Assembly (NCBI GenBank): GCA_965603825.1
Contig: CBFDEM010000018.1
Location: 186,001 to 250,000, forward strand
DNA from: Blepharisma stoltei ATCC 30299
Lineage: Eukaryota > Protista > Ciliophora
DNA: 64,000 nt
Direction: 5' to 3'
The notes beneath the pieces are model-generated. The model was not told the origin of the DNA. It ran no database searches and saw only the letters and a program-made list of their open reading frames with translations. Shown piece by piece: positions 7,824 through 25,000 of the stretch; positions within the stretch are counted from its first letter, which is position 1; every line of letters begins with the position of its first letter. A program made the translations under genes and the position numbers.

Positions 7824-8916
7824 ATGCGTTGCTGCTCTCTTAACTGGCTTAAATTTATATTATTCGAATCCTCAATTATCCAAATTGTAAGCTGTTATTT
7901 AGGGAACTGGAGCATTTATCATCTATGTAGGCGTGAGTTGTCTTAGTGCACCATTAGTTATCGCAATAGACAAAGAATGGGTAGGCGCCGTTTTAATTGT
8001 AATTGGAATTTTTATGCTGATTTTTACCGCTTTTGCAGCATATGGGACTTACTATGAAAAGAAATGATGTCTTTGTTCTTATATGTTTGTTGCGTTTTGG
8101 TCAGGCTCTCTCCTACTAACTTTTGGGATTGCTTGTTTATGGGGTCGAGCATATGCTGGACAATATTTAGGAAGTGATGATAACTGTTATAGTTTAAAAG
8201 CCCTTAGAAAAGCTTCAGACACTGTTATTAGAGCAGGAAGTATTATGTGCACTATTTTCTGCCCATGCAATCTAAAGCCAACTACACATGTAAATCTTTA
8301 CGCTAATCAAACTTTTATTCATGGGCCAGCTACCAAGATACAAAATTGTGATACTTGCTGGAATATTGAATATTATCCAGCTACTACACAAGCTTTATTA
8401 GTCGCTTGAATGAAAAAATATTTAAAAATAGATGTGACGCCAAGCAACTGTGTAATACCTGATGATGCTTTTTCAGATACTTATCTAGGGGATTATGCTA
8501 AATATTTGCCTTTGTTAAAATATGTGGAAAACACTTTTAGCTGCTCTGGGATTTGTGTTATGGAGAATGTCTTTCTGTTTACCGATATTAATAGAGGGAC
8601 TCCAAATGGAAATTGTAGGCAAAAAGTATATGAGTGGGTGAATTGGATTACATTAAAATTTGGGGTTACTAATATTGTATTTGGGTGCATTCAAGTAAGA
8701 ATTATTTAGATTTTTGGTATGATAATTGCATTTATGATTAGGCGGAAAATCAAAATCCAAACTGGGATTGAATGTCAAAGCAATGTTGTTGACACTGAAA
8801 ATGGAATTAGTGAAAAGCAAGGACTTGATGAGAATGTCACTTATACTTATACTCAAACTGATAATGATGCCACTAATAGAGAAATCACTACCAAAGATAT
8901 CGTCAATTTTGAATAA
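7824..8916 (+). CDS. Tetraspanin-like 4-TM protein with Cys-rich large loop (paralogue A, ~353 aa, 2 introns)
   Basis: ATG 7824; introns 7887-7902 and 8695-8709; TGA=Trp at 8065 and 8407. Collinear with the paralogue at 61929-63002; three N-terminal TMs, Cys-rich loop, one C-terminal TM. Confidence 0.85.
7887..7902 (+). other. 16-nt spliceosomal intron (gtaagctgttatttag)
   Basis: Removal gives ...IIQI|GTGAF, matching the uninterrupted FLQLGTGAF of the paralogue. Confidence 0.93.
8695..8709 (+). other. 15-nt intron (gtaagaattatttag)
   Basis: Contains an in-frame TAG; removal gives GCIQ|IFGMIIAF; same position as the paralogue's intron. Confidence 0.92.
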
Positions 8917-9031
8917 CTCCAACTTAAATTAATAATTTGAGAATTCACATATTATATATAGTTTTTATTGTTCAAAAATGCATAAAAGAAATAAAATAAT
9001 GCTGAGACAATTAGATTTATTTGGAATTAAC

Positions 9032-11857
9032 TTAAGAAGTATATAAATACTTTGGAATTTTATCTTCCTCTTCATCTTTCATCAAGCTTGCCTCCAGATC
9101 TTCTGTTGGGATGCTTTCAATTTTATTATGAGAAATCTCCTGATCTTCATGTCTTCTTTTTTCCAGTCTTTCTTGTGCAGGATTAATATTCGGCTGGCTT
9201 TTAACTCTTGACATAGCATTGAGGCTAGGTTTTGGAATTTCTACAGATTCCAAGTCCCAAATTTCATCTGCATACTCTTTTATAGTGCGATCACTTGAAA
9301 ATCTCCCCATATTTAACGCTCCCGTAATCGACATCCTAAGCCATTGATCTTGATTTTTATAAGTCGCATCAGCTTCAGCTTGTTTTTCAATATAAGAATA
9401 AAAATCAGACTTGACAAGGTACACATCATTATGCTCAAGTGACTCAATAAGTGATGATAATTCTTTCGGGTTGCCAAAAGTCCCATTTTTGACTGCATCA
9501 AAGAGTTTTTGTAAGCGAGTCCCTGCTGGCTGCCCACTATGCTGTCTAAGTTTATCAACCTCGTGGACTCTTGCACCAAATATAAATGAGTTTTGGATAC
9601 CGACGTCTTCTACAATTTCTACGTTGGCGCCATCCATTGTTCCCATTATGATGGCTCCATTCATCACAAATTTCATGTTGCTGGTTCCTGATGCTTCAGT
9701 TCCTGCAGTAGAAATTTGTTCAGTCAGGTCAGCGGCTGGGATGATAATTTGTGCACTAGAAACGCAGTAGTTTGGAAGGAAGACGACTTTCATCAGGTCA
9801 CCTATATCAGGATCATTGTTAACGACATCTCCAATTGAATTGATAAGTTTGATGATTTTTTTGGCAGCAATATAGCCTGGAGCTGCTTTTCCTCCTACCA
9901 TAAAGACTCTTTTAACTTGTTTTGCTCTATCATCAACACTCATTGCTTTGAGGGTAAAGTATCTATGAATCATATAAAGAGCAAATAAGTTTTGTCTCTT
10001 GTATTCATGGATTCTTTTTACCATAATGTCAAACATTGCGTCAGTAGGCACTCTGATTCCACACTCTTTTTCAATCCAGCGGGCCAATCTTTCTTTATTT
10101 TGCTGCTTTGCGAGTCTGAATTCTTCTTTAAATTCTTCATTATCAATAAATCTCATCAAGGATTTGGTTTCAGTAAGGTCTGATAGCCAGCTATTAGATT
10201 CGAGGTATTTTTGGTAGAGGTCTGAAAGAGGCTTATTTGAACATTTAATCCATCTTCTTGGGGTGACTCCGTTGGTTTTATTTTGGAATTTGTTAGGGAA
10301 GTACTCGTGGAATCTAGCAAATAGCTGAGTTTTTAGAAGGTTGGAATGAAGGGCTGCAACACCATTTACGGCATGAGATCCAACAATGCAGAGATTAGCC
10401 ATACGGACTGTCTTTGGTCTTGATTCTTCAATGAGGGACATGTAGCCCATGATATCAAATTTTTTAGGATCGTTGGCATATCTTTGGCCAACCTGGTTCA
10501 TAAAGTGGAAATTGATCAGATAAATAATCTCCAAATGCCTTGGAAGAAGCCTTTCAAAGAGCTCAATACTCCATTTTTCCAAAGCTTCGGGCATAACTGT
10601 ATGATTGGTATAGCTAAATACCTTATAGCAAATATTCCAAGCTCTTTGCCACTCTAGTCCATACTTATCCACTAAAACTCTAAGCAGCTCTGGTATAGAA
10701 ATCGCAGGATGCGTATCATTTAGCTGAATCGCCACTTTGTCAGGAAATTCTTCCCAATCTCTTGATTTCTTTAAAAATCTTCGAATAACATCTTGTATGG
10801 TTGCACAGCAGAAGAAATATTGTTGTCTAAGTCTCAGTTCTTTCCCACTTGGTGTTGAATCATTAGGATAAAGCACCGAAGTGATATATTCAGCTTTTTG
10901 CCTTGTTTCAATAGCTCTGAAATAATCTCCTTGGTTAAAGCTTTGGAAATCAAATTCATTAGTAGGGATTGATTTCCATAATCTTAAGTTAATAGTATTG
11001 AAAGTGTCATATCCAGGTATTGGGTTATCATAGGCTACAGCTTTAACTGTTTCGCTTGGGATCCAATTTGATTTTTCTACGCCATTTTCCCACCTTTTTT
11101 CAACTCTTCCTCCGAAGTATACATCATATGACACATCAGAGCGTTCAATTTCCCAAGGGTTCATCTGTGCAAGCCAGTAGTCAGGCATTTCGACCTGGTA
11201 GCCTTTGACAATCATCTGTCTGAAAATTCCATAATCATATCTAATCCCATACCCCCAAGCTGGATAGTCTAAAGTGGCTAAAGAGTCTAAGAAGCAAGAT
11301 GCAAGTCTTCCAAGACCTCCATTTCCAAGGCCAGGATCGACTTCTTCGTCATAGAGCTCTTCCAGCTTGTAGCCTACTTCTTCAAGAGCTTCTCTATATT
11401 TATCTTCAAGGCCTAAATTTACCAAAGCGTTTTGCATTGATCTGCCGATAAGAAACTCAATTGACATGTAGTAGACTCGCTTTTTGTCTTCTGCTGTAAA
11501 AAGCTGCTGGGTGTCATTCCAGCTTTCAATTAGTCTGTCTCTAATTGAAAGAGCTGTAGCTTTGAAACAGGAATTTTTATCAAAATTGAAACGAGTGCGA
11601 GCCAAAGTATACTCGACGTGGGCTACAATTGATTTTTGAATTGTGGATTTTTCAGAGTCTATGTATTCTGCCATAAGTTCCCAGAGTTTTTCATTAGCTT
11701 CTTCTCCTCTCATGACGGAATCAAATTCTGGGCGATAAAGTTTTTGGGCTGACAACTCAACTCTCGATGAATGACGACTGCCTTTGCGACGAAAGCCAGA
11801 GCCTTCTTCATCGACAAATACTCCAGAGCTGTAGCGTTTATCTGATCGCTCCACCAT
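9032..11857 (-). CDS. PYG: Glycogen/starch phosphorylase
   Basis: 941-aa ORF with GLGNGGLGRLASCFLDS, QLNDTHP, VNGVAALHS, KRIHEYKRQ and the PLP-Lys motif EASGTSNMKF. Confidence 0.98.
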   Translation of the reverse strand: MVERSDKRYSSGVFVDEEGSGFRRKGSRHSSRVELSAQKLYRPEFDSVMRGEEANEKLWELMAEYIDSEKSTIQKSIVAHVEYTLARTRFNFDKNSCFKATALSIRDRLIESWNDTQQLFTAEDKKRVYYMSIEFLIGRSMQNALVNLGLEDKYREALEEVGYKLEELYDEEVDPGLGNGGLGRLASCFLDSLATLDYPAWGYGIRYDYGIFRQMIVKGYQVEMPDYWLAQMNPWEIERSDVSYDVYFGGRVEKRWENGVEKSNWIPSETVKAVAYDNPIPGYDTFNTINLRLWKSIPTNEFDFQSFNQGDYFRAIETRQKAEYITSVLYPNDSTPSGKELRLRQQYFFCCATIQDVIRRFLKKSRDWEEFPDKVAIQLNDTHPAISIPELLRVLVDKYGLEWQRAWNICYKVFSYTNHTVMPEALEKWSIELFERLLPRHLEIIYLINFHFMNQVGQRYANDPKKFDIMGYMSLIEESRPKTVRMANLCIVGSHAVNGVAALHSNLLKTQLFARFHEYFPNKFQNKTNGVTPRRWIKCSNKPLSDLYQKYLESNSWLSDLTETKSLMRFIDNEEFKEEFRLAKQQNKERLARWIEKECGIRVPTDAMFDIMVKRIHEYKRQNLFALYMIHRYFTLKAMSVDDRAKQVKRVFMVGGKAAPGYIAAKKIIKLINSIGDVVNNDPDIGDLMKVVFLPNYCVSSAQIIIPAADLTEQISTAGTEASGTSNMKFVMNGAIIMGTMDGANVEIVEDVGIQNSFIFGARVHEVDKLRQHSGQPAGTRLQKLFDAVKNGTFGNPKELSSLIESLEHNDVYLVKSDFYSYIEKQAEADATYKNQDQWLRMSITGALNMGRFSSDRTIKEYADEIWDLESVEIPKPSLNAMSRVKSQPNINPAQERLEKRRHEDQEISHNKIESIPTEDLEASLMKDEEEDKIPKYLYTS

Positions 11858-12258
11858 TATTTTCCAATCAATAAATATGATTTTGATAATAAAATATGAT
11901 TTCTGAATATTTTAGAGGATATCAATAAATTTAAACTTTTCATCACAATTTATCTGATATTTCTGAGGCTCCGATATAGATAACCTCTTAGATAGCATTT
12001 TAATAATGCAATTAGTTAATTAAAGAACATATTAGAGCGAAGAGGCACTTTTATGTTGATCACTTCATTAATAAGCATTTAGAGTGAATTTGATTCTAGT
12101 CGTTTAGCACACTGAATAAAAATAAAATACAAACAAAATCATCAATATAAAAATTTACATAATATTTATCAATCGATATAAAATATTATTTTTTGATAAT
12201 TTCTTTTCTTTCTTTCTTTATCTCTAACCTCTATTCATACACCTCTAATTTTATTTTT

Positions 12259-13713
12259 TTAATTTTTAGTCATTAAATTTACGAACTCTTTCACATCTAT
12301 AACTCCATCTCCATTCACATCCACCTCAGCAATAACTTGATTCCAATAGCTATCTGCTACGATTAATTCCTTTCCCAGAACCTCTTTTAGTTCGTCAATC
12401 GTGATATCCCCACTTCCGTCTTTATCAAACATCTTAAAAGCAGCCTCTAAATTTTCCCTTGACACAAGTTTATTATAATCTGAGCAAGCTTTCAAAAACT
12501 CAGAATAATCAATATTCCCGCTTCCATCAGTATCAACTTCTTTCATAATTTTCTCTACAGTCTGTTGGGCTTCATCTTCACTCATGAATTTCCTGTATTC
12601 TGCATGCAGTTCAGCTCTACTGACTTTGCCATCTCCATTTTTGTCAAGGACTGTGAAACTTTCTTTAAGCTTTTTTGTTTCTTCGTGGGAAATCAGCTGA
12701 GTTGCAAGGAAAATGTGGACAGCGGTTTTAAGCTTGGATGAAGATTGGAATTGCTTCAAGTCGTTGAGTGCTGAGCCAAGATGATTATTTTCATTTGAGC
12801 GGAAATTTTGAATCCAAGGGTGGTTTCCTGCGTCTTTTGCAGTAATTCGGGTATTTGGGTCTACTTCTAAAAGTCTTTGCAACAGGTTTATAGCGTCACT
12901 TGAGATTCCTGGGCATCTTTCAGGAGTGATTCTTATTGGGTTATCTCTGACTTGTTTAAGGATAAAAGTTTGGTCTCTTCCTTGATACGGAGGCCTTCCA
13001 GTAAGCAAAATAAACATAATGATCCCACAGCTCCATTCATCACATTTCTCATTATAAGATCCTGTAAGCACCTCTGGAGACACATAATAAGCTGATCCAA
13101 AGCACCCATTAAGTTTTCTGTTTTTATCCAGCATGCACGAGCTCCCAAAATCTGCAATTTTAACATTTAGTGTCCCTTCGCTATCTTCAAGCAGAACATT
13201 TTCAGGCTTCAAGTCTCTATGAATGACTTTTTTTTCATGGCAATAAGAAACGGCTGAAAGGATTTGCTGCATAATACGTGATGCGTCCTGTTCTGAAAAC
13301 TTTTTTAAAGCAACTATTTTGTCAAATAGTTCTCCTCCTGCGCAATATTCAGTTGAGACGTAAAATTTCCATGGGTCTTCGAAAATCTCATAACATCTGA
13401 GGATATTTGGATGATCGAGGGAGCTCAATACTTGGATTTCTTTGAGCATATAAGTAGAGTCCATTTGCTGGGTACTCAGACCAGCTTTATGGATTACTTT
13501 CACAGCACGCTCTTGGTTAGTAGGCTTGAATATACATAGCTTAACGTCTGCGAATGCTCCTGAACCGATTTTTCGAATTTCTTTGTAGTTTTCGGAAAGT
13601 CCTCCCATGTGCCGTTGTAAGAAGGTTCCTGGGTTTACGCTTGAGCCTGCTGGCTCGACTTTTTTAGGCTCGGTTGCTGCCTTATTTGATTTTTTTGATC
13701 CTCCGCAACCCAT
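12259..13713 (-). CDS. CDPK: Calcium-dependent protein kinase
   Basis: MGC acylation start, kinase domain (HRDLKPEN, DFG, DEWSCG), junction and four EF-hands. Confidence 0.97.
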   Translation of the reverse strand: MGCGGSKKSNKAATEPKKVEPAGSSVNPGTFLQRHMGGLSENYKEIRKIGSGAFADVKLCIFKPTNQERAVKVIHKAGLSTQQMDSTYMLKEIQVLSSLDHPNILRCYEIFEDPWKFYVSTEYCAGGELFDKIVALKKFSEQDASRIMQQILSAVSYCHEKKVIHRDLKPENVLLEDSEGTLNVKIADFGSSCMLDKNRKLNGCFGSAYYVSPEVLTGSYNEKCDEWSCGIIMFILLTGRPPYQGRDQTFILKQVRDNPIRITPERCPGISSDAINLLQRLLEVDPNTRITAKDAGNHPWIQNFRSNENNHLGSALNDLKQFQSSSKLKTAVHIFLATQLISHEETKKLKESFTVLDKNGDGKVSRAELHAEYRKFMSEDEAQQTVEKIMKEVDTDGSGNIDYSEFLKACSDYNKLVSRENLEAAFKMFDKDGSGDITIDELKEVLGKELIVADSYWNQVIAEVDVNGDGVIDVKEFVNLMTKN

Positions 13714-14140
13714 TAATTAATATTGAATTTGATTTTTAGCTAGTTTTTATTATCTTTATTGTTAAAAGCTAAAACTATTACTAACAAATTTTGCTGATTG
13801 CTAAATAAACTCAGAACTTGCTCCACTTTAAATTAGGCAAAAAATTCTGTACCAAGCATTTAAAAATATGCGTTTTATAATTTTAAATTGTTACAGTTTT
13901 AACTTATGTGTCAAAATTGAGATATCAGAATAATTAAAAGAGAAAGATAGTATCCTTATTTTTTTACTTTCTGCTTTTAGCTAATTTCTTTATTTGATAC
14001 CTTCCTTCACAATTTTAGAAAATGACTTTATAAAATGGCATAAAATCGTCAGAAAATGAGAAACTTAGTAACAGCACAAATTTAAATAGAGAATAAAGCT
14101 TCAATAAAATCAATCTTATATAGTAATTATTGTATACGAG

Positions 14141-14806
14141 CTATCTCTTTTTATATATGCATGGATTTAATAGCGACTCTGGTTGTGAACTGCATTGGCC
14201 AAATTTTCTGAAAATAAACAATGAAAAAAAACTATTTGGTATAATTTCTTTATTAAGCTTGAACCCTAGAAGTTTCATTTTGTCAATAAATTCATCATGA
14301 ACAAATCGTGAAGCAACTTCAGCTACAATTAGATATCCTTTTTTCTTTAAGCACCTATAAGCTTCTTTTACCATCTCCACATGATTAGTTCCCATAAGAG
14401 AAAGGCAAAACACAGCTATATCTAATGCTCTATCTTGGAGTGGTAGCTTTGTAATATCGCAAGCAGTGATATGATCAGCTTTTGCAATTAAGTCATAAGA
14501 ATATACTTTAATCCTTTCAAGATCAGACAATTTTGTGTATAGAATCCCATCGCCACAGCCTAAATCAGCTAATTTAATAGGGTTTCCTGAGTATAATTTT
14601 CTAACTTCTTCTTCTACCAAAGAAATCGGCTTCACAGGCCATGACTCTATTTGGGATTTAAAGCCTTTGTGATACTCTTCAAACATTTCTGGATTTTCTT
14701 GAAATAACTTAAAACTTCGAGAGCTTTCAGTGGTATAAAGCATTTCGTTTAAAAATCGAAATTTACCACCTTGAAGCCTATCTTCTCTTGATCTTTTTCT
14801 TTTCAT
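14141..14806 (-). CDS. RRP8: rRNA methyltransferase Rrp8/nucleomethylin
   Basis: FRFLNEMLYT, YHKGF..Q..SWP, ADLGCG, VFCLSLMGTN, AEVASRF and C-terminal PCIYKKR followed by TAG. Confidence 0.95.
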   Translation of the reverse strand: MKRKRSREDRLQGGKFRFLNEMLYTTESSRSFKLFQENPEMFEEYHKGFKSQIESWPVKPISLVEEEVRKLYSGNPIKLADLGCGDGILYTKLSDLERIKVYSYDLIAKADHITACDITKLPLQDRALDIAVFCLSLMGTNHVEMVKEAYRCLKKKGYLIVAEVASRFVHDEFIDKMKLLGFKLNKEIIPNSFFSLFIFRKFGQCSSQPESLLNPCIYKKR

Positions 14807-15229
14807 TATCTGAATTTAGCCATCAAGATTATTAAATATGATTTTACAACTGGAGCTGTATTAGAAAATTCAGGGGATTCAAACTCTGTTTGCTATGGAC
14901 TGTTATTGGAGATCCGGATGCGGTTATGATCAGAGTTCGCTATTGTTTGTTTTGAATATTCGAAGTTTCTGTTTATTAGAGGTCTAGGACTTTTACTTTG
15001 CAGAAGATGTAACTATTTGTTATAGAAATGCTAAACAATTAATTGAAAAAAGAGAGAAGTATTGGTACGACCGGCAGTAAGTTTAAGATGAGATTTAATG
15101 AAAATTAATATTGGGTTAGAAATTATAGTAAATAAATTAGTAAACAGGATGGCTCTTATTATGTCCTGAACAGGAACATTTAAACAAATTAATCAAGATA
15201 TTTAAATTTGGAGATATCATAATAATAAA

Positions 15230-15709
15230 ATGGCAAGCAAAGACGAATTTATCCAGAAAATTGTAAAATTCGCAGAAGGCATTCCTGCAGTTCAAGAGAT
15301 GAGCAAAGTAACTGGTTTATCTGTCCAAACACTTACTTTTGGCACTTTAGCAGCGATTATCTTTTTTATTCTTATATCAATTTGCCCTACCACAACTATT
15401 ATTCTAATTGGAGGTTCTTATCCTTTCTATTTCTCAATAAAAGTTCTTGAATCCAATAATATAAATGATGGAAAAGAATGCCTAAAATTTTGGTTCATAT
15501 TCGGAATTTTCAGCTTGATAGATCCAATTCTAGATCTTTTATTATCATTTCTTCCTCTTTATTTCTTACTAAGAGTTGGACTAATGGTGTTTCTATTTTG
15601 GCCTCAGACAAGAGGTGCAGTCATTTTATATGATACAATGAAACCTCATATGGATAAGTACCAAAAGAAATTTGAAGACTTTTTAGAGGGAATTGCAAAG
15701 CAATCTTAA
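15230..15709 (+). CDS. YOP1: TB2/DP1/HVA22 (REEP/Yop1) family ER-shaping protein
   Basis: G..YP.Y.SIK..ES, LKFWFIFG, FLPLYF, PQTRGA..LY motifs. Confidence 0.9.
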   Translation: MASKDEFIQKIVKFAEGIPAVQEMSKVTGLSVQTLTFGTLAAIIFFILISICPTTTIILIGGSYPFYFSIKVLESNNINDGKECLKFWFIFGIFSLIDPILDLLLSFLPLYFLLRVGLMVFLFWPQTRGAVILYDTMKPHMDKYQKKFEDFLEGIAKQS

Positions 15710-15834
15710 TAGAATTATAATGTTATTAATATAAAAAATCTAAGGATTGAATGTTTAGAAAGTTTGTTTAAAAATATTCTTTTGGTGAATATCAAATCTC
15801 TTTGGCTGATACATATGTATTTAAAATGAAATTC

Positions 15835-16054
15835 ATCAATTAAGACAGATTATGATTCTTAACTTATATAGTTTATGAGATATCGTCAATTGTGCTTTTT
15901 TTGAGCACAAGTATGCCGCCCATAATGGTGGGTCAGTTTATAAGTCTGGAATACGTAGCTAGCCCGCCAGTATGGACGGCATAATTGTGCCCCAAAAAGC
16001 CACAAGGGACTATATCCTGATTTCATAGGCATAATGAGTTGCATAATCATTGAT
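15835..16054 (+). other. Long imperfect inverted repeat / predicted rod-like hairpin (~220-230 nt), intergenic; candidate structured ncRNA or palindromic element
   Basis: Nested complementary blocks: atcaat/attgat, gattatg/cataatc, aactta/tgagtt, gtttatgaga/tttcataggc, ttgtg-cttttt/aaaaag-c-cacaa, gcacaa/ttgtgc, tatgccg/cggcata, ccata/tatgg, tggtggg/cccgcca. GC-rich core in an AT-rich spacer. Confidence 0.75.
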
Positions 16055-16260
16055 TTTCGAACTCTAAAGATAGAAATGTCTATAAGCAACTTTTATCTTT
16101 AAGACTATCAACTCTATCCTTTAGATTTTTGTATAAGAATGAATTCCGTTCTTAAATCTAATCTCTAAATTCGCTTATTTTCACATATAAGATTTTATAA
16201 CACGTGATTACTAAGCGTTTTTCATTAAACGAAACAAGCACCTTGAAGCTATAAAAAAAT

Positions 16261-17043
16261 ATGCTGAGAAGAATAATCAACAGGCCTTTCTCTTCATTAT
16301 CAAAACTCCAAACTCTTATATCAGTAAAATCATGGGAAGAGTTAAAAGATTTTACCAATGAAAATACTCAGCTCATAAGAGATTTTGCTTCAGGGACTCC
16401 TTTTACCGCATCATCTGGAATCACATTTTCAAAAATAGCTCGCCATGAGCAAGATGAAGCCTTTGAAGTCTTAAGCAATATCATTCCAGCCAGAGAGCCC
16501 ATGGCAGCTAAACTTCATATGACAAAAGCCGAATTCAAGCAAAATACGTGTTTAAATTTACTAGTAAACTCTAAATATGAAGATCTAACCATTGTAGCGA
16601 AGGACAAGAATAAAATTATTGGAGTATTTACTTGCATTGATTGGGCAAATCAGAAGAAAAAACACCCGAAAACAGAAGAAGAAATAGCTTTTTGGAAAAA
16701 TAAACTAGAACCGATCGCCTTGTTTTTACACAATACGAATCGAGTCGGGCCAAAATCAGGCCGTATAGCGCACGGAATTACATCAGGAATAGAAGAAAAT
16801 TATTTAAATCAAGGAATTGCTAAATCTGCACTAGCTTTAAGATTAGCTATGACTAGAGTCCTAGGCTATGATTTTTTTATCGTTGAATGCGGATTTGGAT
16901 CTTCTAACGCATTTATGGTCTACAATAAACTATTGCAGTTTGGAAGCGAAATGAGATACGAAGATTTCGAGCATAATGATCAGAATCCTTTTGAAAATTT
17001 AGAAGGTGGGTATCTTTTCATGTATAGGGAACTACAGAAGTAA
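16261..17043 (+). CDS. GNAT-fold N-acetyltransferase-like protein, probable mitochondrial presequence
   Basis: Basic amphipathic N-terminus (MLRRIINRPFSS); acetyl-CoA-binding-like GIEENYLNQGIAKSAL; REPM motif. Confidence 0.65.
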   Translation: MLRRIINRPFSSLSKLQTLISVKSWEELKDFTNENTQLIRDFASGTPFTASSGITFSKIARHEQDEAFEVLSNIIPAREPMAAKLHMTKAEFKQNTCLNLLVNSKYEDLTIVAKDKNKIIGVFTCIDWANQKKKHPKTEEEIAFWKNKLEPIALFLHNTNRVGPKSGRIAHGITSGIEENYLNQGIAKSALALRLAMTRVLGYDFFIVECGFGSSNAFMVYNKLLQFGSEMRYEDFEHNDQNPFENLEGGYLFMYRELQK

Positions 17044-17350
17044 AATCTAATAGCTTCATCGTTTAAATATTATTTGACTTGCTGCATAATCATAAGATTG
17101 CTGACTCTTTGAGTTTTTTTATTTTTATTTCTTTTTTGGAAATCGCAAGCATAGCTTAGCCAAAGTAGGGAAATTAAGTATTTTTAGCAGAAAAATCTTC
17201 TTTCCTCTATAAAATATCGTTCTTTGCCCTTTTTGGTTTTATCAAAGTCTCCATTGTATTTTTACCTTATTATAAAACGGTTAATCTTCATCCAAAAACA
17301 TATTGAAAACCTATCTTAAATCTTTTGTTCTTTCAAAAGCAGATTTTATC

Positions 17351-17701
17351 TTATTTAACTTTACTTAAAATAAGCTTTACTAAGTCAGGTACACCCCTAA
17401 CTTCATCAGTATCTTCCCCAGTCAGCGTAATTCCAAATTTTTCTTCCAAAGCGGTGAGAACTTCTATTTCAGCAAGTGAATCCAATCCAATTTCATCAAA
17501 AAAGCAATTACTTGTCACCTTATCCACTTCCACACCTTCTGCGTTTTTAAGTTGCTCGATTACAGCTGACTCGACTGAAGCTAAGCTAGTTGCAAAATAT
17601 CTATTAATATTTATGCTTGAATTACTGCTTGAAATAGGCTGCCACATATAGCGAAGATGATTTTGTACGGGCTTTGAGAGAAATCTTAATCGGCTCCACA
17701 T
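17351..17701 (-). CDS. ACP: Mitochondrial acyl carrier protein
   Basis: GLDSLAEIEVLTALEEKFGI phosphopantetheine motif; presequence-like N-terminus. Confidence 0.92.
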   Translation of the reverse strand: MWSRLRFLSKPVQNHLRYMWQPISSSNSSININRYFATSLASVESAVIEQLKNAEGVEVDKVTSNCFFDEIGLDSLAEIEVLTALEEKFGITLTGEDTDEVRGVPDLVKLILSKVK

Positions 17702-18210
17702 TTTAACTATAAGTTATATGGTGACATATTGACTATTTATTTTTCAAATCATTTATTAGAAGAAATCAATGCTTTTTGATTTCTTGTTTTTTTTTTAACT
17801 AACAGAATCTTTAGTTATTTTGTATTAATTTTAAATAAGATAATATGGAAATATCTTGCGAAACAAATATTTTCGAATGTTTGTCACGAGTGAAAATTTT
17901 TTTGAAAAGGGATATTGTGCTATTGTATACTGCCATAGGAGTTTATGTCCTCCTAGTTGTAAGATTAATATAGATCAGCTTATTTGGGCTTCTTTCTGCT
18001 ATCCTTATGCATTTGCTTCCTTTATTAGGAATTTGCTTTGTCTGTAAAAAGATTTCACATATCCACACAATTGGTATAGTAAATTACTTGTCAAATCCGA
18101 TCCAAGAACTCCTTCTCCATAGGTCAATTTTTGATATTTTATGTGAAATTTGGTTTGTTCCCAAAATCACTTTATATTTAAAGCGATTTGCATTACCATT
18201 CTTCATTAAG

Positions 18211-18996
18211 ATGAATAGAGAAGAAGCTTACGAAATGTTTAATGAATTAAATCCAGATTTCGCAAAGGCATTAGATACAAAGGGTGTTGTTAATATTCTT
18301 CCTCAGCCAATCTACAATATCATTATGCCATATAAATCACCTCTTAAAGCTGAGATTTCACCAATAAATGGGCTAGAAGCTCTCTCTGAGCCTATTCAAG
18401 CCCCAGAATCTGGCTTGATCCATGTAATGAGTTTTGACTCCAATGACCAAGTTGTAAGAATCACAAGCAAACGAACTGAGCTTTTAGGCTCAGGCAGTCG
18501 AGCTGACAGAATCAAGCCAGTCTCACATAATAAAATTGATGAAAAAATCAAAGAAATTACACAAAAAATCCCCACACTTCAGCCTGTGATGGGCAAGATT
18601 TTAGGAAATAAATTTAGGTCTTTAATGGGTCTGGTTAGTCAGAAGTCATTGGTAAGCTGCACAGTGGCTTCAGGACTAGCGATTCTATTGCAGATAATTG
18701 TGTCTAAGCAATCTCGCGCTTTATCTTTAGTTGGGATCAAAATTGCTTTGTTTATCTGTGCTTTTTCAACGTTAGGGTTTTCTATATTAGGATTATTTAT
18801 AAAATATCTTCATAAACAAGTAGAAGAGCCTAAAAAGTCTGAAGAAATAGACAGTCAACAAAGTGAAGAACTGGGGCATCGCAAATACCCAAGTATGAGG
18901 AGGATAATAGAAGAAAGAACCAAAATAAAGTCAAGATTTAACACAAAGGGAGATAAGAGAAGTTTCTTTAGCCCTGATTTAAATATGGCATTATAA
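18211..18996 (+). CDS. Hypothetical protein with two predicted TM helices (likely start 18211, MNREEAY)
   Basis: ORF open from 18007, but protein-like composition begins at ATG 18211; two hydrophobic segments; TAA end. Confidence 0.7.
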   Translation: MNREEAYEMFNELNPDFAKALDTKGVVNILPQPIYNIIMPYKSPLKAEISPINGLEALSEPIQAPESGLIHVMSFDSNDQVVRITSKRTELLGSGSRADRIKPVSHNKIDEKIKEITQKIPTLQPVMGKILGNKFRSLMGLVSQKSLVSCTVASGLAILLQIIVSKQSRALSLVGIKIALFICAFSTLGFSILGLFIKYLHKQVEEPKKSEEIDSQQSEELGHRKYPSMRRIIEERTKIKSRFNTKGDKRSFFSPDLNMAL

Positions 18997-19024
18997 AGTC
19001 TTCTTTATACTAAGGGGTTAACTA

Positions 19025-22000
19025 TTAGTCATCAAATATGTTAGGCTTGCTTCTCAAATTGTCAAATCTTGTCGAATGAATGTCAATGCCTTCTTCTTCA
19101 TCTGGCTGGTTCCTAGTTGCCATTTCTATGTTTTCGTATTTTGGAGCACCTCGTCCTTTTCTATATTTATTGATTAAATATAAAATGCTGAGCCCTAATG
19201 CTAGGTATCCTAAACAGTAAAATATGGTACCCCAAATTGAATTTTCGTTGGTAATAAATAAAGTTTCGTCTGATTTTCTGATTTCAGTCATAATACAGCT
19301 GTTTTGGGAGGTTTTTTCATAGCCGGTGTCGCAGTCATAGCAGCCATCTCCTGTATACCCTTCATTGCATATACAAATGCTGCCATTTATTTTCCCATGC
19401 TGTGAACATTTAATTGTATTTCCTTCTTCTCCTTTTTCTATTACAAATGTAGGTGGCACAATTGTGGGCGCTGAGAAAATTTTTCCTTTATTTGTGTACA
19501 GCACACCTTTAACCTGGACAAATTTATAGGTCGCATCTGCTTCTAAATCAGCCTTGCTAAACAAAAATTCCCACCTTAAGCCTTTTTTGTCTAATGAAGC
19601 TGCACTTTTTGGTCTAATGAATTTTTTGGATTTTAATTTTTGAAGAACAAAGGCTTTGGCGATTATGTCAGAATTTGTAAGTTTGTCTATAATTAAGCCT
19701 TCATTTGTGTAAGCCTGCTGTGATAATTCAATAGCCACACTAAAGCTGTCTTCTGCGATTGTCTGTTTTCCTTCAGGTGTTATACTTATTACAATAGCAT
19801 TAGGGTCAGCTTCAATAGGCTGCCCTGGATTAACAACTTCAGGCGCTTTTATTTTTTCACATTTATTATTTTCATTTCTTTCATAAGAGGAATCACACTT
19901 ATCGCATAAATCTCCGGCATAGCCTTCATCACATTGACATTTTCCTAATATAGCATTTCTTCCATTAGGTCCACAATTCATTGAAGGTGAAATAATGGTA
20001 GGATTGTTAGGCTTCTGCTCTACTTTAAACTGAGGCAAAGAAGTAGCTACTTGGAATTCGTTTCCTTCGTCATCAAATAAAGAACCCTTTGCAATTATAA
20101 CAGAATAAGAAGCTCCGTATGCCAAATCTTCTGAGTCGAATTCAAATTTCCATTTGGTTTCGCCTTTATTTAAAGGAGCAGCAGAGCTTGCTTTTGCAAT
20201 TTTTTGATTTAAATCGTTGATTATATACACAGAGTCAATAATTACTTTGTTGTTTTTCACAGCCGTAATTTTGTTTTTTTGAGAATTATGAGGAGCTGAA
20301 CTAAAGGTAACGAAAATATTAAGCAGCTCATCTTTCTTCATTGGAGATGAAACATTGATAGTGACTTCAGTTATGGTGGAAGGCTCATCAATTTTGTCTT
20401 TGATGCACAATCCTTCCGATGGCGTAAATCCTGCAACACACTCGTGACAGGTAACTCCTGTGTATGGTTCTGGACAAACACATTTGAATGCTTCATTACA
20501 AATTGCGTTGGCTTTAGGATTACATATGCAGCTCATTGTGCAGTAGCTGTGCTTAATCCCATCTGACACTAATTGGAAACCTGATTCTGTTTGAGATTTT
20601 TCATCAATTTTCAATTGGTAACAAGTGCTTTCTTTTAATTTTGATGCATCAAATTTGAATTTAATTTTATTTGGAGCATTTTTTGATATTAATAAACTCC
20701 CAGCAGTAATTTTTTCATATTGGTCGCTTTCTAAAGACACCAACTTACCAACTTCTTTAGCATTAGCAATTGGACTATCAAAAACAATAAGAATTGTAAG
20801 CTCTTCATTTGGGTTATGATGAGTCAAATGCCCAGGATCAGCCAAAGTTACCATATAGCTTGAAGACTTTTTCTCTTCAAATACCGGAATATATTCAATA
20901 TTAAAAGAAAAAGGGAAGCAGGAATCAATATCTTTATATCTCTGTATCAAATGATTCGAAGCTACTGCCTGCTTTAATACAAGCTTATATTGTCCAGGCT
21001 CAAGTTCTTCATTTTCAATTATACTCGCGAAATTCATAAGTTCTCCCGTTTCGTCATCAGTTAAACTTTCCCATTTACTTTTACTAATTTGTTCATCATC
21101 TTTAGATAAAACCATATTTAAATCATTTGTGAGGAAATCATAAGTGGACTCGATCGACACAATAGCTTTGACTGGGATATTTATTGTCATTTCATACATA
21201 AAATTAGAATTTTCTGTACCATCTGATGTAATTCCGGCAGGGAAGGACTTTTTTTCTCCTATCATCCATTTATCGAAAATTACGTAATTATCTGATCCAT
21301 ACATTTCTTTTTCTTTTGTGAAATCTATTGAGGATTTTGGTAAAACTTTGGAAAGGTCGTGGTCTGTTACTTTGCATTTCAAAATGTTTTCGACTTCTTC
21401 TGTGGTTTCTATCACAATTTTTAAGTCATAAGTGACGCAGGAGTCTTCGATTTTGTCTTTTATGTAGGTGAGTAATAAGTAATAAGGAGTTTTTTGAGCT
21501 TTTATGACAAAAATGTAGCTTCCTATGTTTGATTTGTTTCGGGAGTAAGCGACTGGGTCTTTAAAAGAGGAGTCTCTATAGACAGCACTTTCTATGATGA
21601 CTTTTGGGTTGTTTGAAATAGTCATGATTCTTGCGATTCCGCTCTTTGGTGTTGATATTTTTAACACTTCTGAGCTTATTTCATCTTTTATCTTAAAAGT
21701 TCCATGGAAAGAAATGGAGCCATCTCTTGCTTGTGGTCCTCCAAAAACTTTTGAATGTTTTGAAGTCAAAGAAGGTGGCAATTCGCCTCCATTGCATGTA
21801 AGTTCTTCACTAATATCTGATGTCTTTATAGAAACTTGAAGCGGCCAACAAGCATTTGGAATATCAACTCCATGTGATGAAATTATATGTAAAATATAGC
21901 TCCCTTTTTCTAAATCTACTATAAGCTCGCTATAATTTTCAATACCTAACGATCTTGCTACAACTCCATTTTCGTTAGAAAGCTCAAGGGAGATAAACCC

Positions 22001-25000
22001 TGATAAAGCATTTTCAAACGCAACAATGGCTTCAAATTCACTGTCTTTTGCAAATTCAAGAGGTATAGAATGGTCAATTGCTTGAGAATTATGCATGATG
22101 CTGAATTCATTTATACCAGTCTTAGCATCGAAAACAGATGGGAGAGAAGCTGGGCCTGAGCACTGATAAATCGAAGTGATTTTGTTAAACTCTGTCATAG
22201 AAATGATTTGAAGATCCATTTCAAAGCTTGGGCACAGCCTTCTCGAAGGCAGAGCTGCATCACTATAATAGCTGATTTCCAATAAATAGCTTCCAGGCTT
22301 TATTTTCTTATGTAGTCCACTGCTAAATTCTTCAGCTGTCGCCTTTTCAACACTCTCCACAATGCTCTCAGCCGTCATCAAGTTTATTTCAAACGTAATT
22401 TCTTTTTGTGGAACCACAAAAACCCTTATAATTGACTCTTCATCAATTACAAAATCAAAAAGAGTTGCCCCCATCAATACATCTAATTCCAGTTCTTTAT
22501 GCCAATGCAGGTTTCCTGTTTGGATTTGTCCAACTAAATTAAGTGACCCAGGCTGGTCTACATATGAACAAGTCTCGCTTTTCCTTATCATTGATTCAAT
22601 ATCATCCCATAATGATAGGTCTTCAACTATAATGCTTGTTGAGAATTTCACACAAGACTTGTAGAGGGATTTCCCAGACTCTTTGAGAACTAAGGTATAC
22701 TCTCCTTGGGTTAATGGGAATGCTGGCAACTCAAATCTATGGGAGGCTTCAAAGCTGCCGTATTCGAGGATCTCTTTTTCTTTGAGGACTTGGAGAATTA
22801 GGCCACTTTGTAAGAAGTCTGACTGGATGTGGCCAGTGAGCAACGCGCCATCAGTTGTGATTTTGAATGGGATTTCAATGTTTAATGGTTTAGCAGACTG
22901 TAAAAATTCATATTGATTTTCATTCATCAGCTGAGAGTAACCTTCAGGGCTATTAAATCCAAACAGGATAGGTCCTGTATTTTCAAGAAAACGCTCAGTC
23001 ATAATTTCTCCTCCAGGGAGCTTCACATTGCAATTCTGCGAAGACCCAGCAGTTAAAGCTGATATTGGTGCAATTTCAATAAGCAAAGAATAAGTATGAC
23101 AAGCATCCTTAGAATTAGGATAATACGAAATTACAAGCCTATAAGTCTGATGCTGCTTCAAAATTTGGTTAAAGCCATAAATTGCCACATCTCTTTCTCC
23201 AGGCGCTCCATCACTTATAACTGTACTTTTTCCCATCATCAAAGCAACCCTCATTGGTGAGCCTTCACTTTCAGCTGCAACTCTAATAAAGCTTTCACTG
23301 TTCAAATAAAATGCAATATCATTGGTAGCGTTTGTATAGGAATTCGGAGCCATCATATTTGGAATAAACACTTTTGTGACTGGCAAATAATCACTTGGAG
23401 TATCTTTTACACCTAATTTGTCAAGGGTATTTAGAGTAGGAGGGAAAAGCTGAGCGTCTTCTTGGAAGCATGGCCATTTTTTTAGCTTGGTTTCAGTGGT
23501 TCCTACAAGTTTTCCTCTTAGTTGAAATGCTCCACAGTGAGGTAAAACTTTATAATTGTCTGGGGAGTCTATATTTTCATAGTCGTTAGTTGTGTATGAT
23601 ATTTCTTTAGAAGTTGGGCCAGACTTGATGCTAAATATATAAGTGCCTGGGGCTAATGCTCCTTGGAATGACCTACGATCATGTTTTCCAAGCTTCAAAG
23701 AATCTGTGGTATCGCCTTTGACTATTTCTGTGTTTTCTCTTGGAAGTCTTTTTTCTAGAGAAATAGTAAAATCGTTGATAACAAAATCTGAATAAATATC
23801 GAAATAGCAATAGGCATATATTGGTAGATAAAATGTGGATTGAAATACAACTTCTTCCCCTTTGGCAACTGATTTTAATGGAACTCTAAAGAAATCTCCA
23901 GGAGTTGAGCTTAAATCTACTTTTGATTTCGTTGAATTTAAATTTTCGCCGATTTTTGCAAATTTATCAGCTAAATCCGAAGTGTTATCTTCACAAGCAT
24001 TCATCCCCAAAAACTCAGCAAATCCTCTAACTGCTTCATTTGGAGATATCCCTATTTCCAATATAAACGTTTCACAAAACTTATGTCTCGGATCATTTAT
24101 TACACTATTCAAAACTCCAAACTCAATTGAATACTTCCCAGGCTGCAGCTCTTTTAGAATCCCTTCACTTTCCCCAATTGCATTGCTTTTTCCAATCTCT
24201 ATCCCTTGACTATTTTTCAGTGAAATATCAATATCGATTCCTGAAGGCTCTACTGTGATTACTCTTAGCACTGAAGGCTTTGAGATTTCAAACTCAGTAG
24301 CTTGTTTTACATTGAGGAAATCTGCTATAACACGATCTGAGTACCGAAGAAAACCATTATCGTCCATAAGTCCTGGAGTATTCAAAGAATGAGGGATGTG
24401 GGCGGCTTCACAATTAAAGCGGTCTTCTCGCTGGATTATTGGCTCAATATTCACATGAAGAGAAAAAGGGATTTTACCGCCTAGAGAATTCAGCATATCA
24501 TGCTCAGCAAGTGTCATGCCAGCATAAAATACAGTAATCGCAAATTTTCCTGCACCAAAGCCAGAGTAAACAGTGACCGCATTTTTGTCAACTCTTCTGC
24601 CAAATAAGCATGAGCCTCTCTTTACACAGTTTAGCTTTGAAAATTTGGTTAGGTTGGTTTTCGATTTTGAAAATAATAAGCCCATTCCTCCTCCAGTTAA
24701 GAAATCATAGTCTAATATAAAGCTTACGAAGTGAAAAAGTTATCTTTCAAAGACCAGTCAAGCCAATATCTTTGAGCTCTTGTGAGATTTCTGGGTTGGT
24801 AAATTCAAAGGTGTTAAGTACTGAATCACCCATCTCAATTTTTGAGGTGTCGAGAATATAAGTGGAATGAGTCCCTGAATAAGGGGTAAAAGATTGAAGA
24901 GTATCGCTAACATCAGATAAATCAGGAAACCCTTCTGCGTAGTTTTCCAGCGATTTAGGCAAAAGTTCTTTCAGGTTTGCATAAGGATGAACTGCAATAT

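Follow-up and report, generated by a model that had tools for sequence, protein, structure and literature searches.

A strain-polymorphic 231-nt palindrome in the macronuclear genome of Blepharisma stoltei, a candidate relic of a palindromic MITE/IES-like element

The spacer between a Yop1-like gene and a gene labelled GNAT in Blepharisma stoltei ATCC 30299 contains a 231-nt imperfect palindrome, at positions 15828-16058 of the window, the whole 64,000-nt stretch of DNA analysed. On balance, we read this hairpin as a strain-polymorphic, MAC-retained and decaying relic of a palindromic MITE/IES-like element. A foldback element of roughly 231 bp would have arisen in, or entered, the Yop1-GNAT spacer before the split of two strains, and either it would never have been removed from the somatic nucleus or its excisability would have been lost; neutral decay would since have produced 20% arm substitutions, six indels and a faster AT drift in the 5′ arm, and the sister strain would have lost one arm through a 111-bp deletion. 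If this is correct, the locus provides a small but concrete case for the descent of ciliate IESs from mobile palindromic or MITE-like DNA, implies that genome editing can miss insertions of this class where they are intergenic and harmless, and illustrates the erosion of a palindrome. Of the two readings offered by the first-pass annotation of this DNA, a decayed palindromic or MITE-like element is therefore the one favoured here, whereas a novel structured RNA is weakened; the hairpin adds no new RNA class, and a tempting 'novel ncRNA' candidate is removed.

Extent, fold and rarity of the palindrome

The MFE structure of the + strand of 15820-16070 is a single rod that runs from the pair 15828/16058 inward to 15938/15957, comprising 83 predicted pairs around a symmetry centre at 15947.5. 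This agrees closely with the first-pass annotation, which had described a rod of ~220-230 nt centred on ~15947, with a possible extension to 15828/16058, now seen to be the outermost MFE pair; every nested complementary block that it had quoted is found at its position in the Yop1-GNAT spacer. The palindrome length is 231 bp when counted from the outermost MFE pair and 220 bp when counted from the annotated blocks, the boundary being uncertain by about ±10 bp after decay. The features of the locus, including those drawn from the X6 and X8 contigs and from the germline locus L003 described below, are as follows:

15230..15709, + strand: upstream TB2/DP1/HVA22 (Yop1-like) gene, 159 aa, PF03134; transcript contigs stop near 15715
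15741..15742: TA junction of an 81-bp TA-bound IES (L003:9400-9480) of the germline assembly, 86 nt left of the hairpin; an X6 loose end lies before 15741
15811..15921: 111-nt segment absent from X8, made up of 17 nt of flank and nearly the whole left arm, and bracketed in the reference by ATA at 15809-15811 and 15922-15924
15828..15938: 5′ (left) arm, GC 0.33, from the MFE pairs 15828-16058 to 15938-15957
15939..15956: apical loop of the MFE structure, with the symmetry centre (about 15947.5)
15957..16058: 3′ (right) arm, GC 0.43, from the MFE pairs; present in the sister strain (X8 contig over 15922-17300)
16212..16214: BogoMITE-type junction, TAA, 154 nt right of the hairpin, where X6 contigs run into a poly-C end CTCCCCCCC..., compared with the BogoMITE-like IES L003:19771-20155
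16261..17043, + strand: downstream 260-aa ORF, labelled GNAT by the first-pass annotation, without a Pfam hit; transcript contigs begin near 16220

The folding energy of the + strand RNA is -83.7 kcal/mol, compared to -51.3 ± 4.5 kcal/mol for 200 dinucleotide shuffles, none of which folds as well (z -7.2). The - strand RNA reaches -76.5 kcal/mol (z -6.75), 7 kcal/mol short of the + strand, and the single-stranded DNA reaches -42.9 kcal/mol (z -6.1). The comparison with shuffled controls, which the first-pass annotation had proposed for both strands, thus separates the locus from its controls on each of them. Since each RNA strand and the DNA give stable folds, the rod belongs to the DNA palindrome as such and is not tied to one RNA strand.

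The core displays a GC content of 0.44-0.48 compared to 0.19-0.27 in the surrounding spacer, as previously claimed, and its ungapped portion (15879-15932) shows 80% complementarity to 15963-16016. Over the complete arm-to-arm alignment, 76 of 95 positions are Watson-Crick (80%) and the remaining 19 are not, with six indels totalling 23 nt.

The rarity of the structure was assessed by a palindrome scan in 15-nt steps, in which the 140 nt to the left of each position were locally aligned to the reverse-complemented 140 nt to its right. The hairpin locus scores 26.5, the runner-up in the 64-kb window 16.5 (99th percentile, 13.5), and the best position in 200 kb scanned elsewhere on this contig 22.5, making the hairpin the strongest long palindrome among the 264 kb of MAC sequence scanned; on the strength of this top score, the observation is both real and rare.

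Pairing bias, RNA families and transcripts

A strain-specific hairpin RNA gene would be a different explanation of the locus, and one that we regard as improbable: a + strand transcript would fold into the rod and be diced into endo-siRNA or miRNA-like products, or act as another kind of structured ncRNA. The + strand fold is very stable and better than that of the - strand by the margin given above, a T4 run at 16054-16057 follows the hairpin, and the GC-rich core together with the 7:2 excess of U·G pairs would be compatible with selection acting on a + strand RNA. The arm differences on the + strand comprise seven U·G pairs and two to three C·A mismatches, two of them clear, which bears out the earlier count of about seven G-U pairs and about three C-A mismatches. 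The excess is nevertheless non-significant (binomial p 0.18 for 7:2 and p 0.34 for 7:3) and one-sided, since in all seven U·G pairs the U is contributed by the 5′ arm and the G by the 3′ arm. Given that the U always lies in the 5′ arm, which is also the AT-richer of the two (GC 0.33 versus 0.43), uneven decay explains the bias no less well than selection for RNA pairing does.

The Rfam 15 scan, performed at E ≤ 10 over 15000-17000, returned no family at its gathering threshold within that interval, the best matches being MIR860 (23.7 bits; threshold, 89) and MIR869 (20.6 bits; threshold, 330). Such sub-threshold matches to plant miRNA precursors are a generic signature of any long hairpin. The first-pass annotation had recognised no tRNA, snRNA, SRP, RNase P/MRP or telomerase motif, and the scan concurs with the absence of a known RNA family.

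In animals and plants, hpRNA and young MIRNA loci are formed by inverted duplication, and the hairpin resembles them as a long imperfect intergenic fold-back with a stem of ~80 bp. It differs from these loci in that (i) neither arm shows homology to any potential target gene in a BLAST of each arm against the MAC genome, (ii) a conspecific strain lacks one arm, and (iii) the scores against MIRNA families lie far under their gathering thresholds (23.7 versus 89 for MIR860; 20.6 versus 330 for MIR869).

The transcript evidence comes from X9 and X10, which are probable RNA runs available as 31-mer contigs and as such blind to RNAs of 22-24 nt. In their contigs, coverage of Yop1 ends at about 15715 and that of GNAT starts at about 16220, and no reference-allele transcript contig crosses the hairpin in either run, although the absence of a contig is no proof. 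The lone contig that touches the outer right arm (15993-16155; depth, 2.5) carries nine differences, which assigns it to the arm-less allele of the other strain. Within these runs, GNAT is represented by contigs of both strain alleles, in agreement with the published time course having been made from an ATCC 30299 × HT-IV cross. The lack of a reference-allele contig on the hairpin therefore speaks against an abundant mRNA-like transcript, but not against small RNAs; hairpin-derived small RNAs are unreported for Blepharisma in the literature searched. Taken together with the absence of an Rfam match, the non-significant G-U excess, the folding of both strands and of DNA, and the sister-strain allele without a 5′ arm, these observations weaken the reading as a novel structured ncRNA.

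The sister-strain allele and the age of the palindrome

Run X8 shares its organism label with the reference and its study with the source samples, displays about 95% identity at the locus, and most likely represents strain HT-IV. In its contig (3,463 nt; depth, 104), the sequence equivalent to 15004-15810 is joined straight to 15922-17300 with zero letters between, the overlap at the junction being 1 nt. When this junction is imposed on the window letters, the remainder folds with z -2.6, compared to -7.1 for the intact locus. As the X8 allele is devoid of 15811-15921, the rod is not conserved even within the species, and as 15810 is joined directly to 15922, the 5′ arm is dispensable.

Searches for further relatives with the GNAT and Yop1 proteins recovered two sequences, a transcript from MMETSP at 95% identity and a contig of a distant relative from Logan at 60% identity, whereas scanning metagenomes for the GNAT protein gave no match. 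The distant contig (L002; SRR24908292; 30.8 kb) encodes a GNAT 60% identical to that of the window and keeps the order Yop1 ... GNAT - acyl carrier protein, but with two AAA-ATPase genes and another ORF inserted between Yop1 and GNAT. Upstream of GNAT, where the gene order thus differs, L002 carries no hairpin. The conservation in relatives expected of a small-RNA precursor is accordingly seen neither in X8, which has no 5′ arm, nor in L002.

The divergence between the arms bears on the age of the palindrome. In the flanking spacers (15004-15229 and 15710-15810), the two strains differ at 33 of 327 positions (about 10%), fewer than the 19 of 95 that separate the two arms (Fisher p 0.013). In the 101 nt adjoining the hairpin, the strains differ at 14 positions, and the comparison of this value with the arm divergence is non-significant (p 0.26). 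Because an inverted duplication that postdated the split could not exceed the divergence between the strains, the palindrome is probably older than the split and an arm was lost in the relative. From these sequence comparisons, a deletion in the relative is the likely polarity of the 111-nt difference, although this direction is only moderately secure. Palindromes are unstable, and their usual fate is the deletion of one arm with minimal microhomology.

The same observations bear on a local inverted duplication that involves no mobile element. In this scenario, which we consider unlikely though it deserves serious weight, a replication template switch or a fold-back repair event would have copied about 110 bp of the spacer in inverted orientation; decay would have followed, as would the deletion of one arm in the sister strain, unless, as is less likely, that strain never acquired the arm. 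The segment missing from X8 ends exactly at the start of a short inner stem, ccataatggtggg / cccgccagtatgg, which could have primed such a fold-back. Conversely, an arm divergence twice that of the strain spacers, in addition to six indels, makes a recent gain in the reference lineage unlikely.

The 111-nt difference may also reflect DNA editing, and not a germline deletion. The left arm (111-113 bp) would then be an IES-like segment that is excised during MAC development of the sister strain and retained in ATCC 30299, which we judge very unlikely. Periodic IES length peaks have been described in B. stoltei, with the uppermost at ~110 bp and ATA among the commonest terminal direct repeats, and about 10,000 cryptic IESs have been reported in the MAC (PMC9942856). 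The 111-nt segment (113 nt from ATA to ATA) falls in that uppermost peak, and the bracketing ATA is one of those repeats. However, the X8 junction retains two bases more than a precise ATA-to-ATA excision of the reference would leave, the ends are unlike the weak TAT-rrr-tttt consensus, and a 3-nt repeat at both ends is fairly often expected by chance in AT-rich DNA. Inspection of the sequence of the 111-nt segment for strict consensus ends (TAT-rrr-tttt) found none. A switchable palindrome, whose left arm the mating-type strain HT-IV would process as an IES and ATCC 30299 would keep as somatic DNA, has a very slim chance of being correct; if it were, alternative DNA editing, passed on by inheritance, would make or abolish a hairpin of 230 nt upstream of GNAT, along with any small RNAs derived from it.

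Germline context, sequence relatives and known palindromic elements

The preferred reading as a MAC-retained relic rests also on the germline context of the locus. The GNAT protein of the window is also encoded on contig CAJZBQ010000018.1 of assembly GCA_914767885.1 (locus L003), which is colinear with window 8481-24145 except for 16 extra segments that break it and carry TA/TAT/TTA-type terminal repeats. The presence of these segments identifies GCA_914767885.1 as a MAC+IES (germline-inclusive) assembly. L003:9481-10868 corresponds to window 15741-17127 as one colinear MDS, placing the hairpin within MAC-destined sequence, and the X6 contigs, which are 100% identical to the window, run continuously over 15741-16214. 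The hairpin is therefore not germline-limited, since it is present in the MAC assembly and lies in an MDS of the MAC+IES assembly. Partial excision had been considered from the X6 depth (55.7 for the hairpin contig, about 90 beside it) and was rejected, given that depth is one figure per contig.

The host of the hairpin is a gene-free MDS of 474 bp between germline insertions. With the 81-bp IES on one side and the BogoMITE-type junction on the other, this spacer has repeatedly received mobile DNA. The X6 contigs leave the window at 16212-16214 and 16474 into CTCCCCCCCCCCCTCCGTGA / CCCCCCCTCCGTGAGTGAACAAGACCATTA, the start of the 385-bp BogoMITE-like IES (L003:19771-20155). The MAC+IES assembly shows no IES at either position, so these are BogoMITE insertions that are unassembled, heterozygous or polymorphic, and one of the two falls within the GNAT ORF. 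Farther upstream, 23 foreign letters, GCGCCATCATCGGGCAATCAGTA, precede 15129 in an X6 contig, and X8 carries a TA insertion after 15128; 15129-15130 may represent a further IES junction, one that the MAC+IES assembly does not show here.

The BLAST for further copies proposed in the first-pass annotation, run against the MAC genome (41,464,486 bases; 64 contigs), recovered only the locus itself, with no second copy of the whole hairpin or of either arm at E ≤ 10; in L003, the germline locus of 20 kb, none of the 16 IESs is similar to the hairpin either, with all z values ≤ 1.5. The foreign loose ends of X6 bear no likeness to the hairpin arms (p 0.37-1.0). As regards the hallmarks of MITEs, terminal inverted repeats are present, the whole element being an inverted repeat, and multiple dispersed copies are absent from the MAC genome. 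Neither end of the palindrome is directly flanked by a clean target-site duplication; TAAA occurs at 15822-15825 and 16065-16068, 3-6 nt beyond the last pair, a coincidence possible by chance in AT-rich DNA. Because the hairpin has no sequence relative in the MAC genome or among the 16 L003 IESs, a mobile origin is unproven and the local inverted duplication is a serious rival, to which the single copy, the lack of relatives and the absence of a clear target-site duplication all lend support.

The closest known system is provided by the palindromic IESs of the same organism. B. stoltei contains 376 completely palindromic IESs, of which 153 (41%) fall in a peak at 225-231 bp (PMC9942856, Seah et al. 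2023, SI), which bears out the mention of germline-limited palindromes of similar length in the first-pass annotation. Those of 225-231 bp belong to several unrelated sequence families, and palindromic IESs have been suggested to be MITE derivatives, so-called 'MITIES'; the class is delimited by ≥90% identity in self-alignment, with clusters and the repeat family rnd-1_family-160 (PMC9942856). The hairpin shares with the ~228-bp palindromic IESs (i) the host organism and a fully palindromic architecture, (ii) a span of 231 bp, within the 225-231 bp peak, and (iii) a location among germline insertions, in a spacer that also carries the 81-bp IES and the BogoMITE junction. In contrast to them, (i) it sits in the MAC and in an MDS, and is thus no IES in ATCC 30299, (ii) its self-complementarity is about 80% with six indels, below the ≥90% of the class, and (iii) no TA-containing repeat adjoins its ends. 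The match in size and architecture makes a MAC-retained relic of such a MITE-like element the simplest reading, one in which the mobile palindromic ancestry and the neutrality of the subsequent decay are both presumed. Under a local inverted duplication, the agreement with the length of the 225-231 bp class would be a coincidence, and the GC-rich core would be unlike the 19-27% GC spacer from which it would have been copied.

A second palindromic system is retained in the MAC itself. A 55-nt, near-perfect, GC-rich palindrome with TA-rich flanks lies on the same contig (C18:267929-267983; L007:7929-7983) and belongs to a family of at least four MAC copies, with others at C35:599259, C43:325856 and C20:818956. 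Like this family, the hairpin is a palindromic element kept in the B. stoltei MAC and GC-richer than its surroundings; unlike the multi-copy, near-perfect 55-nt elements, it is single-copy, four times longer and decayed. The two show no sequence similarity (p 0.5-0.9), and the hairpin is thus a different, much more decayed element that is at most of the same general kind.

Further germline-limited or inverted-repeat segments were observed in the neighbourhood. Two IESs of L003 are strongly palindromic, in keeping with the preferred reading of the hairpin: L003:18032-18374 (343 bp; TTA-bound; 17% GC), whose central hairpin of about 115 nt is near-perfect, and L003:4930-5640 (711 bp). A germline-limited segment of about 664 bp (window 17127-17145 / L003:10869-11532) separates GNAT from the acyl-carrier-protein gene; no clean direct repeat bounds this segment, and a low-complexity stretch leaves 17 bases of the window unaligned. 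Just past the end of the window, a 215-bp segment of 20% GC (C18:250608-250822; L006:608-822) is bounded by inverted repeats of about 46 nt that are 83% identical, and looks MITE-like.
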